Below are positions 54,048 to 64,000 of a stretch of 64,000 nucleotides of DNA, piece by piece. The translations under genes were made by a program, and so were the position numbers. Where the stretch lies: contig CM074821.1 in assembly GCA_037447605.1 (NCBI GenBank), forward strand, positions 868,001-932,000, in the 5' to 3' direction. How positions within the stretch are numbered: position 1 is the first letter of the stretch; every line of letters begins with the position of its first letter. Below the pieces are notes generated by a model. The model ran no database searches, was not told the DNA's origin, and saw nothing but the letters and a program-made list of their open reading frames with translations. The DNA comes from Zygnema circumcarinatum SAG 698-1b (lineage: Eukaryota > Plantae > Zygnematophyceae).

Positions 54048-55972
54048 GGTCCACGCGGTCCGGTTTGAGATTCAGACTTTCGGGGACTCGCAGACTCGGC
54101 TTCCCGTTGTTGAATCCGAATCCGACTTTGCCCGATCAAATCCGTTAGCATGAAAATTCGAATTTCATACGGAAAAGTCTGAAGTCGGAAAATTTCTCGT
54201 ACAGTACCTTACTGTATTTCGTACTTTGAGTACTTGAGTGGTGGCCATAATCCGTAGACGGCAGTTTCGGATTTCAGAAGGGGAAGTCTCAAGTCTGAAC
54301 TCCCTGATTTGAACTTTGAGGGGGCCCCTCTCCATTTGCCTCTCCCCCCTCTCTCTCGCGAGGGCGCCCTCCTCCCCGTGCAGGGAGAGACAGCCAAGTG
54401 GTAGGCATTGGGGAAGGAGCCACGTGGCGCTACCTGGATCAGAGAGGTGAGTCCATGGCCATGGCTGCCTGCTTACAGGCCCTCTTGGTTTTGAGATATT
54501 TTGCAGGACTGCGGGATGACTGGGAAGAAGGTCGCAGAGACGTATAGAGAGAGGAGTGATGGGAGGGGAATAGAATGGAGACGAGGAGTGGGAGAGTGGG
54601 AGTTCTGCATTGTGTGAGGAGGAGGGAGGCGGAAGGGGGTGGGGGCGCGCAAGGTGCCAGCTGGTTCAGGGGATTTTCATGATGCAAGATGAAGAGTCTA
54701 AGCTTGTGAGTGGGATGAAAGTGAGAGTGAGAGTGAGAGTGAGATTGGGAGGTGAGTATACTGTACAGTATGTGAAGTAAGGGATGTGGGAGAAAAGTAT
54801 GCGTTTTCAGTAAAATGCAGAAGGAAAGTGATTGGTGGAATTCAGGGTAGTGGAAACTGAGGCAGGTTGAGTGAAAAAAAGATATGGTGACCTTGAAACG
54901 GATCAAAAAGGAAGGGCATGTCTATAGTGATGGATTAAGAGAGCGGTGTATTATTCGAGAGAACGGATGTTTCGAGAAAAACAAATATAGACGATCTAAG
55001 TCTGGAGAAACTCTCTCAGGGTGGCTTCGGAGGGCTCATTTGGAGAGAGTGGAGCAATGTGGGGGAGTAGAAGGAGCAGAGAGAATTCGTGTGGGAATGT
55101 GTGCATGCATGGATGTCTGTTGAAGGTATACATCGGTGCTCAGGACAGGCCAGAACATAAGAGTTAGGGTAGTCCAAGTGAGGTTGCATGAAGAGAGAGG
55201 GCTTTTTTTCCCTCCCTCCTTCCTTCCCTAAGGTGAGGGTACGGTTGTACTGTGAGCAACAAAAAGTCGAAGGCGAAGGTAGTTGTTCAGAGAGGACGAA
55301 TAGAAGGACGTAGGATAATGCAGGTAGTTCGAGGGTTATCAGTAAGTTAGGTGAGCTACAATGTACACGATTGAGTGTACTTAGTAATCTCGGAAAAAGA
55401 GGACGACTATCCAGGGAGGGGGGGCGGGGAGGGGGGATGAGGAGGAGGAGAAGGGATGAGAATGAAACGAATGGAGAGAAGAGAGAACAGACGATGGGGT
55501 GGAAGTGGCGTAGGGTTGGAAAAGTATTGATTGGGGAAGAGAAGAGATTATTAAAGTTTGCATTTCGTATGAAGTATCCTTGATGATTCATATGCACCTT
55601 TCCAGGTGGCATTTATAAAACGTTATAGATCTGCATATTCTAGCCACCTAAGGTTTTCTAAAGAATTGCGTGGAACTATTTTGACTTTGCTCTGGTTGTA
55701 CACAGAATCTAATGCAAAATCATCGCTTAGGTACTATTAGTTCCGATTTCTACTGTTACATTTTAACCCAATAGCAGGGGCCTGTTCAGTTTGCAGCATC
55801 ACTCTACTTGTCCTACAAACTTATCATCGATCCATACTCCAACTTCGAAACGAAACACTCTCATCTCCTTTATCCCTTTCTGTGGACAGGCCAAACCCTT
55901 CTCGATAAGCTTTCCTCCCTTCGACTCCCTCTTCCTTTAGCTAGAAAGTTGCGAACTTCTCCCTTCATCGGA

Positions 55973-57211
55973 ATGAGCGGCCAAGTGGCACCTCCCCAAC
56001 ACACCAGATCTTTTTTAGCCTCTAGTAGTAAAACTAGTCGCCACATGGAACGGGAACTCGGAGCCTCTTCGGGGCCTTCTCGCTCTGACAATGCAACTTG
56101 GCGACCGGGAAGTATGCAAAATACTCGCCTTGGAGGGGGAGGGGGAGGGGGAGGAGGAGGGGGAGGGGGAGGGGGGGGAGGGAGCTTTAGCAATAATAGA
56201 CGTATCGCCGCCCAAGCTTCATCAACAAGCTTAGCAACAACTTGTCCCGCGGTTGCTACAAGTGATGGGTCGTCTGCTGGAAGCATTGAAATGGACAAGG
56301 GGCAGTCCACTTCTTTTGGAGGGAGAGAGGAGCAAAGAGACTGGAGATTGGGAGTGTTCAAAGAGACCGTTCCATATGACCGTTTTGTGCTTATGGCTAC
56401 CTGCCTTATAGGCCAAACTGTGGAAGTTCACACAAAACTGGGGCCGGTGTATACCGGAATATTCCATACTGCCCGTGAGCATGATTTTGGTGAGTTTTGG
56501 AGCTTTCATGTCAACCCTATCTGGAGGGTTTTTGCAGTTTTCGATTTTCGTTTCCGGACAGAGCTTCCTATAAAGACTTGTGTTTTTCCGATTCATAGTT
56601 AAGAACTGGTTGTGGGGTCCTTGGAAGCAGAGGTGGTTTTGAAGATGGCGAGGCAAACAAATGATCTTGTGAACAAGGAGAGTTTGGCAATGAGGGAAGC
56701 TGCTAAGAAGCCCCCTCTTAAGGTGTTGATAATCAGTGCAAATGACTGTGTCCAAATCATTGCTAAGGTGAGCTCACTTCATAGGTACATAGTTTCCTGT
56801 TTTCCTTTTCTTGGGGTATTCTGAGGATGAAATCCTCACTCTCCACATATTTTCAGTCCGATGTTGAGTGAGGGAATTGTGGAACCGTGATATGGAGTCT
56901 TGCTTGATGTATATCCTGTTATTCATACAGGCTGGTTGGAGTTTATGTTATTCTCTCCTACTCAAATCTTAAACTGCATATTCTATGTGAGTTCAAAACT
57001 CCCAATGGTATCTATGCAGGATATCGTCATAGGTTGGGGCACACACCAACAAGGAGAAAGGAGTTCGGAGGGTTTGCGGATGGATGCTGCCTTCAATGGA
57101 TGCTCTTCAGCCGGGTATGTTTTTAGGTCCTCTGAGAATGAAGATTGGAATAAGTTCCGTTCAAATGCCATGGTGAAAGACAAGATTACACCACACATTC
57201 CTCAAAAATGA
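55973..57211 (+). CDS. CID3/CID4: Truncated ataxin-2/CID3-CID4 paralog (Sm-ATX domain only; 281 aa if exon 3 reads to its own stop)
   Basis: Exons 55973-56489, 56631-56767, 57020-57211 (or 57020-57114 if spliced onward). DRFVLMATCLIGQTVEV...YTGIFH...DF.VVLKMA...VQIIAKD Sm motif. Same intron positions as the copy at 62748. Confidence 0.8.
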
Positions 57212-57605
57212 AATTTCAGTCGCGCTGTTAGAACTCTTGAGCTCATTTGATTCAAAGTTTGGTCAGAGACGCTCGTCTATTAGTCAACGTTTTGAGTGAA
57301 CATAGCTTAACTACCCCTATGATTATCTTGTATTATCGTGCCAAAGTATTATCCTTACCAAAGTTTGTGAGATAGGTCGAACGTTGGGTCGATCGGGCAT
57401 CACACACTTCTAGAAAACATCTATGTTTGTTGGTTAAGTGGTCCATTCTATGAGCTGCTGGGTTGGATAGAACCTTCAGAGAACACAAGAAAGTGGAGAA
57501 GTTAGAATTTTGAAAAGTTAGGGAGAGCATTTCTTGTTCTACTCTGAATCTGGAAGGTTTGGCTGCAGATCTGCAGCACTCAGAGGCTCGTGCAACTCAG
57601 GGAAT

Positions 57606-57997
57606 ATGGCGGAAGGAAAATCTCCCGCAGAGCTGGTTGTGGTTGCATCAAAAAATGTGGTGAAGGTTGATGCTACAACTCGAGCATTTCAACGAGCTTT
57701 TCCCGAAAGCTCGTTCAGATTCGAAAGGTTTAACGCCAATTCAGGAGTGTCTGCACAACCTCTGTCTGATGAAGAAACGTTGCGAGGGGCAAGGAACAGG
57801 TATCTGTCCTCTTATGCAACTTTATTTTTACTTACATCGGAAGAATCAGCAGCATAGAATGCCTGGCAAAGATTGTACTACTTCATGTATGATCTTTCTG
57901 TTATGTTTTCAGCTGGAAGTGAGCATTCAACCTACAATCAGGTTTCATGTCAGTCTGTCGATAGTATCCTGCACACTTTCTTTCCTTTTGTTCGTTA

Positions 57998-58032
<35 letters not shown>

Positions 58033-58039
58033 GCATCAG

Positions 58040-58098
<59 letters not shown>

Positions 58099-58099
58099 G

Positions 58100-58132
<33 letters not shown>

Positions 58133-58830
58133 TATCATTATCATCATCATCATCATCTTCATCTTCATCATCATCATTCTGACATATGCACAAAGCTCTG
58201 TGAACTGTTTCCGTAGAGCAAAACACGCCATGGAAAGAGTGGAGCAGGCGGACTATGTGGTGGCCATAGAAGGAGGTGTGGAGTGGTCCCGGTTGGAGTG
58301 TGAGCCACAGCTCATGGCCTTTGCGTGGGTGGTGGTCCTATCGCGGGACTTGGAAGGGAAAGCAAAGACTGCAGCCTTCATGCTGCCTCCTCCCATTGCA
58401 GAACTCATAGCAGGTGTGCCCTTACCCCCTCCACCAAAAAGCTTCAGGAGCAAGCTTGCCACTTTGTTACAACAGTCAGTCTGTTGTGCAATAGGAAAGT
58501 TCAATATGTCGTTTCTGGCAGTAGCCTTTCTTACAGTTTTTCAGCTTTTAGGGTTGCAAAATCTACCTATATTGAGTTTGCTTTTTGAGGGGGGGGGGGC
58601 TGTTGATGTGTGCAGGTGGCAAGGACTTAGGAGAGGCAGATGATGAAGTGTTTGGACGGACCAATGGGAGGCAGCAGAATGGCACCATTGGCATGCTCAC
58701 TCGCGATGAGATTCAAAGGCAAACTTATTACGAACATGCCATCACGTTGGCCCTAATCCCCTTTGTGAATCCCGCGCTTTATCGGAGCCCTTCCGTCCCT
58801 GTCATCCCGGCGGGCTCCTTGCCCTTATGA
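57606..58830 (+). CDS. yjjX: Non-canonical purine NTP phosphatase (ITP/XTPase, YjjX/NTPase_I-T family), 201 aa from its own ATG
   Basis: Exons 57606-57799, 58217-58413, 58616-58830 with consistent phases (2,1). VVVASKNVVKV, SGVSAQP..EETLRGARNRA, VAIEGG, A.LPP, LG, GTIGMLT...RQTYYEHAITLALIPF align by eye with E. coli YjjX. Confidence 0.9.
57998..58177. repeat. (CAT)n microsatellite (~60 units) in intron 1 of the YjjX-like gene
   Basis: Directly visible; source of the poly-S/I/H and poly-D/M spurious ORFs. Confidence 0.95.
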
Positions 58831-59030: not shown

Positions 59031-59083
59031 TTAGGGTTAGGGTTAGGGTTAGGGTTAGGGTTAGGGTTAGGGTTAGGGTTAGG
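59031..59083. repeat. Interstitial telomere-like tract (TTAGGG)8 plus TTAGG
   Basis: Eight perfect units, 200 bp downstream of the YjjX-like stop codon. Confidence 0.9.
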
Positions 59084-62747: not shown

Positions 62748-62908
62748 ATGAGCAGCCAAGTGGCAGCTCCTCAACACACCAGACCAATTGCAGCCAATGG
62801 CGGAAACCGCCGCCGCATGGAACGGGATGTGGGAGGCAATTCTGGGCCTTCTCGATCAGACAGTGCAAACTGGCGATCAGGGACAACGCAAAACACTCGA
62901 TTAGGAGG

Positions 62909-62949
<41 letters not shown>

Positions 62950-64000
62950 GAGGAGGAGTGGGAGGAGGAGGAGGAGGAGGAGGAGGAGGAGGAGGAGGAG
63001 GAGGAGGAGGAGGAGGAGGAGGAGGAGGAGGAGGAGGAGGAGGAGTGGGAGGAGGAGTGGGAGGAGGAGGCAATAACAGCAGCCGAGGGGGCCCACAGGC
63101 TTCTTCCCTGGGAACTGCTCCCCCACCCCAAGGGCCGGCAAGTGGGGGCCCCTCTGCTAGAAGCTTGGTGGTTGAGAAATTGCTGCCTCCCTCTGTAGGA
63201 GGAGGGAGAGAGGAGGCATTGGGAGTGTTCAAGGACAACGTTCCATATGACCGTTTTGTGCTCATGGCTACCTGCCTTATAGGCCAAACTGTGGAAGTGC
63301 AGACAAAACTGGGGCCGGTGTATACCGGAATATTCCACACTGCCCAAGAACGTGATTTTGGTCAGTTCTGCAGATTTCACGTTAACTCCGTTTGGTGTAG
63401 GTCTATTGCTGTGAGGGGTTGGCCAGTTTGGATTGCCCCAAGTTTTGGAGGAGTTTGGTTGTCAGATTGACTGTTTTGCTTGGTGGTGGGGAACAGGAGT
63501 GGTCTTGAAAATGGCGAGGCAAACCAAGGACCTTGTGAATATGAAGAGTCCGGCAGTGAAGGAAGCTGCACGCAAACCTCCTTCCAAAATTCTGATCATC
63601 AATGCAAAAGACTGTGTTCAAATCATTGCCAAGGTGAGTAGTAATCTCTGTCATCTCCACCATGAGACAGACTGATAGTTCTCTAAATCGAAAAAAACGC
63701 TATAGTTTAGAAAAAAAAATGCTCGCTCCATCCATCCATTTTCGAAGTCCTTTGGCAGACCCCAAAAGGAAAAGCTGTTTATCAAGAAAGAGATATGGAC
63801 TGGGTTTATGCTGGGTTTGGGGAGTAAAACTGGGCTAGTAAGCTGGAAATGCTAATTGGACAATCCTTAAAAGTGCTTGTCAACCTAAGAGAGAATTGAA
63901 GTCTGGCTATGCAGGATGTTACCCTGGGGGGAGATTCACAAATGAATGGAAAGCTGCGAGATTACAAAGGGGAGCTTGTAACAGACACGGGAATCTCAAA
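62748..64000 (+). CDS. CID3/CID4: Ataxin-2 homolog (CID3/CID4-like), 5' exons; continues beyond the window
   Basis: Exons 62748-63360, 63497-63633, 63915->64000; Sm-ATX motif; exon 3 contains ELVTDTGIS, typical of the region preceding LsmAD. Confidence 0.88.
62910..63071 (+). repeat. Coding (GCA)12-(GGA)n repeat giving Ala12 and a 42-residue Gly-rich tract
   Basis: Directly visible in exon 1 of the ataxin-2 homolog. Confidence 0.9.

Follow-up and report, generated by a model that had tools for sequence, protein, structure and literature searches.

A partial ataxin-2 duplicate spliced in frame to a YjjX-type NTPase gene in the alga Zygnema circumcarinatum

When the reading frame for an RNA-associated domain lies directly upstream of the frame for a nucleotide-cleaning enzyme, do the two form separate genes or a single chimeric one, and, if a single one, how did it arise and what could its product do? 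The question is raised by the plus-strand locus at 55973-58830 of a stretch of 64,000 nucleotides (nt) from Zygnema circumcarinatum SAG 698-1b (assembly GCA_037447605.1, contig CM074821.1, positions 868,001 to 932,000 of the forward strand; hereafter the window, to which all coordinates refer). The upstream part of the locus encodes an Sm domain of the ataxin-2 type (SM-ATX), a module of RNA and ribonucleoprotein (RNP) granules, and the downstream part encodes a YjjX-type enzyme, a hydrolase of inosine triphosphate (ITP) and xanthosine triphosphate (XTP). A reading of the bare sequence (the sequence-only reading) had proposed that the two are spliced together across a 454-nt intron, from a donor at 57114/57115 to an acceptor at 57568/57569, to give one protein of 463 residues.

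This joint is present in RNA. Six runs from one organism, belonging to three studies, contained 39-45% of the sampled words of 56200-57990, which is similar to the share of that interval taken up by the modelled exons (by coordinate arithmetic). We aligned the contigs of four runs (X1, X2, X6 and X3, from three studies) to 56190-57990, an interval chosen to avoid two repeats, one G/A-rich in exon 1 and one of CAT units (180 nt) in the intron that follows exon 4. In every one of the four runs a single contig, 565 to 1140 nt long, carried all three of the joints 56489>56631, 56767>57020 and 57114>57569. These fused contigs cover 56437-56488, skip 141, 252 and 454 nt, and span exon 4 to 57799, and in all four runs the next 30 letters match the first letters of exon 5 (from 58217) exactly. 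Each of the skipped stretches begins with GT, ends with AG and coincides with exon borders; the runs are therefore cDNA, in which the predicted donor and the first-choice acceptor are used. The splice had thus been predicted to the nucleotide, and the alternative acceptor considered alongside it (57583/57584) was unused in all four runs. The shorter side of the 57114>57569 joint measures 96 nt.

The fused contig is, moreover, the deepest one in each run (depths in Table 1), and the depth of exon 1 upstream of it, where contigs cover the part within 56190-56488, is about the same (70 in X1 and 77 in X6). Three of the fused contigs extend 616 to 624 nt past 57799, a length that would fit exons 5 and 6 (412 nt) followed by ∼210 nt of 3' untranslated region, with an end near the telomere-like repeat at 59035. 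We regard it as practically established that the locus is one transcription unit with one open frame and that the fused form predominates in the four runs.

The structure of the gene agrees with this result. A script check confirmed six exons that are flanked by AG and GT throughout and have compatible phases (Table 1), all as read beforehand from the sequence. Their lengths of 517, 137, 95, 231, 197 and 215 nt sum to 1392 nt, or 463 codons and a TGA; no exon contains a stop in its own phase, and the codons split across junctions encode E, G, R and G. The introns measure, in order, 141, 252, 454, 417 and 202 nt. The 58413>58616 junction was inferred from the spliced relatives P0001 and P0012, in which AELIAG-G falls at the same point. 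Exon 3 derives from the beginning of the exon that comes after the Sm domain in ataxin-2, and is shortened by the donor at 57114/57115. On the enzyme side, the YjjX ATG at 57606 lines up with the start methionine of the stand-alone proteins of relatives, and the 12 codons between the acceptor and this ATG were therefore once leader sequence. Two further statements of the sequence-only reading held when they were recomputed: 394 nt lie between the end of the exon 3 read-through stop (57211) and the YjjX ATG, and the 200 nt before this ATG are not CT-rich, at 45% C+T compared to 63.5% and 59% before the two ataxin-2 ATGs of the window. Much of the 417-nt intron between the YjjX exons 4 and 5 is occupied by a CAT/CAG microsatellite of 180 nt (57998-58177).

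Table 1. Features of the fusion locus, the neighbouring ataxin-2 gene, and contigs from within the fusion intron in four runs
Feature	Coordinates	Strand	Content
Exon 1	55973..56489	+	ATG, Ser/Gly-rich low-complexity N-terminus, first half of SM-ATX; Pfam E 7.8e-10
Exon 2	56631..56767	+	Second half of SM-ATX, Pfam 42-81/81; flanking joints both in four runs
Exon 3	57020..57114	+	31-codon linker; joint 57114>57569 in four runs
Fusion intron	57115..57568	+	454 nt; exon 3 read-through (stop 57209-57211) and former YjjX upstream region
Exon 4	57569..57799	+	12 former leader codons, ancestral YjjX start codon 57606, first third of NTPase_I-T
Exon 5	58217..58413	+	Middle of NTPase_I-T, IEGG motif; Pfam 51-110/162
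Exon 6	58616..58830	+	Last third of NTPase_I-T, algal C-terminal tail (SPSVPVIP...), stop codon
Parent paralogue, ataxin-2-like 5' part	62748..64000	+	Exon 1 62748-63360, exon 2 ∼63497-63633, exon 3 from 63915; runs off window end
Intronic contig, run X1			None; depth 0 versus 79.6 for fused contig
Intronic contig, run X6	57121-57316		Depth 6.1 versus 79.7 for fused contig
Intronic contig, run X3	57119-57532		Depth 5.7 versus 15.7 for fused contig
Intronic contig, run X2	57181-57543		Depth 19.4 versus 32.3 for fused contig

Exon-by-exon searches of Pfam found that both domains are present in full. SM-ATX (PF14438) is complete across exons 1 and 2, with positions 2-35 in exon 1 (39.3 bits, against a cutoff of 29.8) and the remainder, to position 81 of 81, in exon 2 (21.3 bits); exon 3 matched no Pfam family. 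Similarly, exons 4, 5 and 6 carry positions 1-49, 51-110 and 113-162 of the 162 positions of NTPase_I-T (PF01931), the exon 4 match (E 1.8e-13) including the motifs S-x-N-x-x-K and SxQP...EET..GA.NR. Against the Vibrio cholerae protein VC0702 (PDB 1zno, 183 residues), the same three exons match residues 12-66, 70-121 and 127-182 (E 2.3e-13 for exon 6), while the structures of YjjX from E. coli and Salmonella (1u5w and 1u14) gave weaker matches. We compared the exon translations with the 31 columns that are conserved in ≥85% of 99 homologues and found 29 of them kept; an apparently absent invariant Arg proved to be an AGA codon split over the exon 4/5 junction, which brings the count to 30. The sole real change is Pro to Val in S-x-N-P-x-K, a position that also holds Val in P0012 and holds Asn in P0001, and the motifs that are kept include S-x-x-Q-P, E-T-x-x-G-A-x-N-R and E-x-x-G-G. 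Because the domain is full, aligns throughout with 1zno and keeps the family-conserved residues, the enzyme half looks catalytically intact. Beyond the end of the bacterial domain, streptophyte algal YjjX proteins have in common a tail of the form SPS-V/H-P-V/I-I/L-P (58780-58827 here, and the C-termini of P0001, P0012 and P0009).

The other parts of an ataxin-2 protein were not detected. For LsmAD, neither exon 3 nor the read-through as far as 57211 gave a Pfam match at E ≤10, and the stretch EDWNKF in that read-through, which is reminiscent of LsmAD, was dropped as a candidate relic on this result. For PAM2, the exon translations and the read-through contain no match to a strict or a loose pattern, which is a weak test. 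A word-based protein search with residues 67-238 of the open frame at 55775-56599 returned none of 397 candidates of 151-481 residues at E ≤0.001, and is uninformative for longer ataxin-2 proteins.

The Sm half has a close counterpart in the window: an ataxin-2 gene begins 3.9 kb downstream of the fusion gene on the same strand, with SM-ATX found by Pfam in both its exon 1 and its exon 2. The two genes align by blastn at 76% identity over 55956-56141 and at 75% over 56328-56772, the second block spanning intron 1. They have in common the start codon, the phase-1 donor, intron 1 (∼60% alike) and exon 2 (76% protein identity); their N-termini are 60% identical, and the DNA of their first Sm half is ∼95% identical (56365-56466 versus 63236-63337). 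The third exons open alike, with DIVIGWG in the fusion and DVTLGGD in the parent, and then diverge. Similarity thus runs from 17 nt before the ATG to early exon 3, a copied block of ∼1.1 kb, and the window stops before the region where LsmAD and PAM2 would lie in the parent. On these grounds we take the Sm half to be a partial duplicate of the downstream ataxin-2 gene, an origin that the sequence-only reading had put forward. A simple tandem duplication of YjjX together with the ataxin-2 5' part is unsupported: it would leave another copy of YjjX upstream of the Sm copy, and there is none in the window, nor do the sequences that precede the two ataxin-2 copies resemble each other; the duplicated block amounts to only ∼1.1 kb. 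The poly-Gly tracts of the copies differ: the fused copy has a GGGGGA-type repeat of ∼50 nt (56132-56184), and the parent (62913-63070) has (GCA)n and then a much longer (GGA)n of ∼150 nt. The assembly graph of the RNA contigs is broken at 56393-56466, a 74-nt stretch that the paralogues have in common but for 56428 and 56431. Since depth is roughly doubled there, and the stretch holds the two letters of the paralogue in X6, the contigs suggest that both ataxin-2 genes are expressed.

The divergence of the two halves bears on the age of the fusion. Between the two Sm copies we found 0.12 nonsynonymous (dN) and 0.44 synonymous (dS) substitutions per site by the Nei-Gojobori method; the latter value is uneven, rising from 0.18 in the part within exon 1 to 0.95 in exon 2, and a gene-conversion tract may lie around 56365-56466. 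The YjjX half of the window gene is 78% identical in protein to that encoded by the transcript of the nearest relative (L001), with 88% identity in exon 5 and a dN of 0.155, and its synonymous sites are saturated (proportion of differences, pS, 0.72), values that point to strong constraint on the enzyme. Because the Sm copies have a dS of only 0.44 while YjjX and L001 are at synonymous saturation, the duplication is placed after the species split from the nearest relative. The fusion gene looks like a young, lineage-specific chimera.

Relatives of the enzyme were sought with a HMMER scan of 1.84 billion representative proteins, in which exon 4 gave 310 matches at E ≤0.001. The best of them, P0001, comes from transcript contigs (L001-L003) of another organism, in which the splicing of the equivalents of exons 4-6 follows that of the window gene, and the ATG is preceded by an unspliced leader of ∼745 nt that has no Sm similarity. 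The leader contains an open frame of 166 codons (L001, 244-744) that is in frame and continuous with YjjX (371 residues in P0001), is Cys-rich and matches no Pfam family; it may be due to chance or may be a different N-terminal extension. In a second alga (L005; P0012 and P0151) no SM-ATX adjoins YjjX, and in genomic DNA of Closterium (L004), the genus of the nearest named YjjX homologues, there is none within 10 kb on either side of YjjX. YjjX is therefore unfused in three other streptophyte algal sources, which is a thin sampling of relatives.

Broader searches similarly found no second case. PF14438 occurs in none of 88 homologues of the P0001 enzyme domain (word search, 204-649 residues), and Pfam scans of 20 of the best among the 310 matches, mostly extended or multi-domain proteins, found no SM-ATX; the partners in those 20 are a tandem YjjX, NmrA, GNAT, RecO_N and Lys/Ala-rich tails. 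All 30 of the named Atlas clusters nearest to the YjjX domain carry PF01931 alone, and a literature search found no paper with both ‘YjjX’ and ‘ataxin’. The fusion protein is itself missing from the collections searched, so that absence elsewhere is bounded by their content. The combination of SM-ATX with NTPase_I-T looks like a new domain architecture, not found in any other organism searched, as had been supposed without recourse to databases. In two of the matched chains, P0003 and P0073, a full NTPase_I-T domain occurs twice, in a tandem YjjX-YjjX arrangement.

Could the locus still be two genes, with the chimera a by-product of read-through transcription (a conjoined RNA), and with a 281-residue Sm-only protein that ends at 57211 and a 201-residue YjjX protein made from 57606 under its own promoter as the actual products? 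Several observations pull in this direction, and away from a single fused product. Contigs inside 57119-57543 were found in three of the four runs, so that coverage of the 454-nt intron ranges from 0 to 60% of the depth of the fused contig (60% in X2 and 36% in X3), and introns 1 and 2 are covered less (not at all, or 3.7 in X2); another isoform therefore exists. This minor form may represent intron retention, a short RNA with the Sm part alone that ends after 57211, or a YjjX RNA that starts in the intron, and a start between 57569 and 57605 is likewise conceivable. The ATG and N-terminus of YjjX are as in the stand-alone relatives, one of which transcribes the gene with a long unspliced leader. 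Contig depth, too, reflects expression level poorly; the part of exon 1 upstream of 56437 is tied to the fused contig by equal depth only, the graph being broken there; and contigs rather than raw reads were aligned, so that transcript starts, ends, strand and full-length molecules are presumed. All of the support, finally, is at the level of sequence and RNA contigs. Nevertheless, the intron is uncovered in X1, and its only contig in X6 has 8% of the fused depth; in both runs exon 4 occurs in no contig other than the fused one. This contig also outranks all others in depth in each of the four runs, and its depth matches that of exon 1 in X1 and X6. An RNA that retains the intron would have its stop (57209-57211) 588 nt before the next exon junction, and a stop well upstream of an exon junction generally marks an RNA for nonsense-mediated decay; the minor intron-retaining RNAs are for this reason probably degraded as nonsense transcripts. 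Two separate genes thus seem unlikely. An intron-hosted small RNA was dropped as the source of the intronic contigs, as 57115-57568 has no Rfam match, the only ones in the region being sub-threshold and on the reverse strand of the CAT microsatellite, where we attribute them to chance. Least probable of all is that the joint is a mis-assembly of short reads or that the runs are DNA. The run type is recorded only as ‘RNA?’ or ‘?’, and the alignments are of contigs, but single records skip three stretches with exact GT..AG ends and continue into exon 5 in four runs of three studies, the runs hold a fraction of the sampled words similar to the modelled exon share, and a de Bruijn mis-join would need a common 31-mer, of which there is none between 57114 and 57569 (window self-blastn).

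If the fused mRNA is translated, the reading that we lean towards is that its product would be a still-active ITP/XTP house-cleaning NTPase with a disordered Gly/Ser-rich N-terminus and an ataxin-2-type LSm fold able to tether it to RNA or RNPs. A possible, though less probable, alternative accepts both the fused mRNA and its protein and holds that the Sm module is a functionless passenger, drifting since the duplicate donated a promoter and a start codon. It would suit the passenger that none of the relatives examined has the fusion, which postdates the nearest species split, that exon 3 has strongly diverged from the parent, and that LsmAD and PAM2, which mediate the known interactions of ataxin-2, were not found in the copy. 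The second Sm half also scores 5 bits lower on Pfam in the fused copy than in the parent (21.3 versus 26.3), and the summed SM-ATX scores are 60.6 and 65.4 bits, a rough stand-in only for an outgroup-polarised rate test. What speaks for a maintained module is that the Sm frame is intact, that exon 1 alone exceeds the Pfam gathering score, and that dN/dS across the domain is 0.28, at a dS of 0.44, while intron 1 has fallen to ∼60% identity. This ratio sums both copies, however, and is not assignable to the fused one without an outgroup, and a tract of gene conversion would also keep the copies alike, so that it is not decisive. Any role of the Sm module is thus purely inferred.

The origin of the gene and of its product can be pictured as follows. 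After divergence from the closest relative sampled, about 1.1 kb of the neighbouring ataxin-2 gene would have been copied to a site upstream of a three-exon YjjX gene already in place, with loss of the LsmAD and PAM2 parts. A donor within the old third exon (57114/57115), either new or formerly unused, would then have captured the YjjX exons. Transcription would now start at the promoter of the partial duplicate, and splicing of this donor to the acceptor at 57568/57569, 37 nt upstream of the resident YjjX start codon, yields an mRNA with one 463-codon frame and its stop in the last exon. The predicted LSm module could bind RNA or RNP partners, though not the poly(A)-binding protein, and most of the YjjX enzyme from the locus would then be made in an RNA/RNP-tethered form.

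Members of the ataxin-2 family (human ATXN2, yeast Pbp1 and plant CID3/CID4) have the same order of a low-complexity N-terminus followed by SM-ATX (LSm), and the N-terminus and SM-ATX of the fusion derive from the neighbouring family member, with which it has the start codon and the position of intron 1 in common. The fusion differs in that it is cut ∼31 codons after the Sm domain and the C-terminal part is replaced by the enzyme, with neither LsmAD nor, by the weak test above, PAM2. If PAM2 is indeed missing, the link of ataxin-2 to the poly(A)-binding protein is therefore gone in the fusion. The YjjX/UPF0244 family of ITP/XTPases (E. coli YjjX, 1u5w; VC0702, 1zno and 1zwy) has the full NTPase_I-T domain in common with the window gene, down to 30 of the 31 conserved columns. 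The window gene differs from these in being eukaryotic and having introns, whose positions, from the data on relatives, are consistent with ones common to streptophyte algae, and in the C-terminal tail (SPSVPV-I/L-P) that it shares with its algal relatives; the 230-residue N-terminal extension with an LSm domain is found in the fusion alone. Other multi-domain YjjX proteins are known in which the enzyme is joined to a tandem YjjX, NmrA, a GNAT acetyltransferase, NUDIX, PF02698, PF07866, PF01337 or Lys/Ala-rich tails, but among those checked none has an RNA-binding LSm partner.

The nearest functional analogy comes from plant RNA viruses. The abstract of one study describes the HAM1-type ITPases of cassava brown streak viruses and of euphorbia-infecting potyvirids and secovirids as ‘replicase-associated ITPases’ (PMC10768138), and plant-virus ITPases are also treated in a review (PMC7865087). 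In this precedent, as in the proposed fusion, an enzyme that cleans up ITP and XTP is attached to RNA machinery and is not free in solution. The likeness is one of function only: the viral enzymes are of the Maf/HAM1 type and not YjjX, they are joined to a viral polyprotein or replicase, and they stem from a virus and not from a cellular gene. In line with a possibility raised in the sequence-only reading, the LSm module might bring an active ITP/XTP hydrolase to messenger RNPs or RNA granules, such that deaminated purine nucleotides would be cleaned where RNA is made, stored or repaired; we consider this quite unlikely. If it were true, the fusion would be a cellular counterpart of the replicase-attached plant-virus ITPases and would represent a novel functional class, that of house-cleaning enzymes tethered to RNPs and maintained by selection.

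As in other young chimeric genes formed by partial duplication, the duplicate here supplies the promoter, the start codon and the first exons through a newly used donor. The present gene differs in that both halves are complete domains, the fused RNA is dominant, and the window has no YjjX copy besides the recipient. The locus provides a clear example of a gene born through exon capture, foreseen in the sequence and afterwards verified in RNA: a partial duplicate of the gene for an RNA-granule protein took over the expression of a gene for a house-cleaning enzyme, with an LSm and YjjX architecture found nowhere else in the very large protein collections searched. It thus offers a natural experiment on the time that a newly formed multi-domain protein takes to become the principal product of its locus, and on any benefit of tethering a nucleotide-sanitising enzyme to RNA or RNPs. 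Its significance would grow if the Sm part were under selection or directed the enzyme to RNPs; if the Sm part is a mere passenger, the locus is still a well-dated replacement of promoter and start codon in a streptophyte alga.

Two minor features lie between the YjjX stop codon and the parent ataxin-2 gene. An interstitial telomere-like array, (GGTTAG)x8, occupies 59035-59082, ∼200 nt past the stop codon. In the gene-poor stretch beyond it, two pairs of inverted repeats (59697-59812/60156-60264 and 59531-59580/59637-59687, with 82% and 86% identity, respectively) may be the remains of a small transposon.

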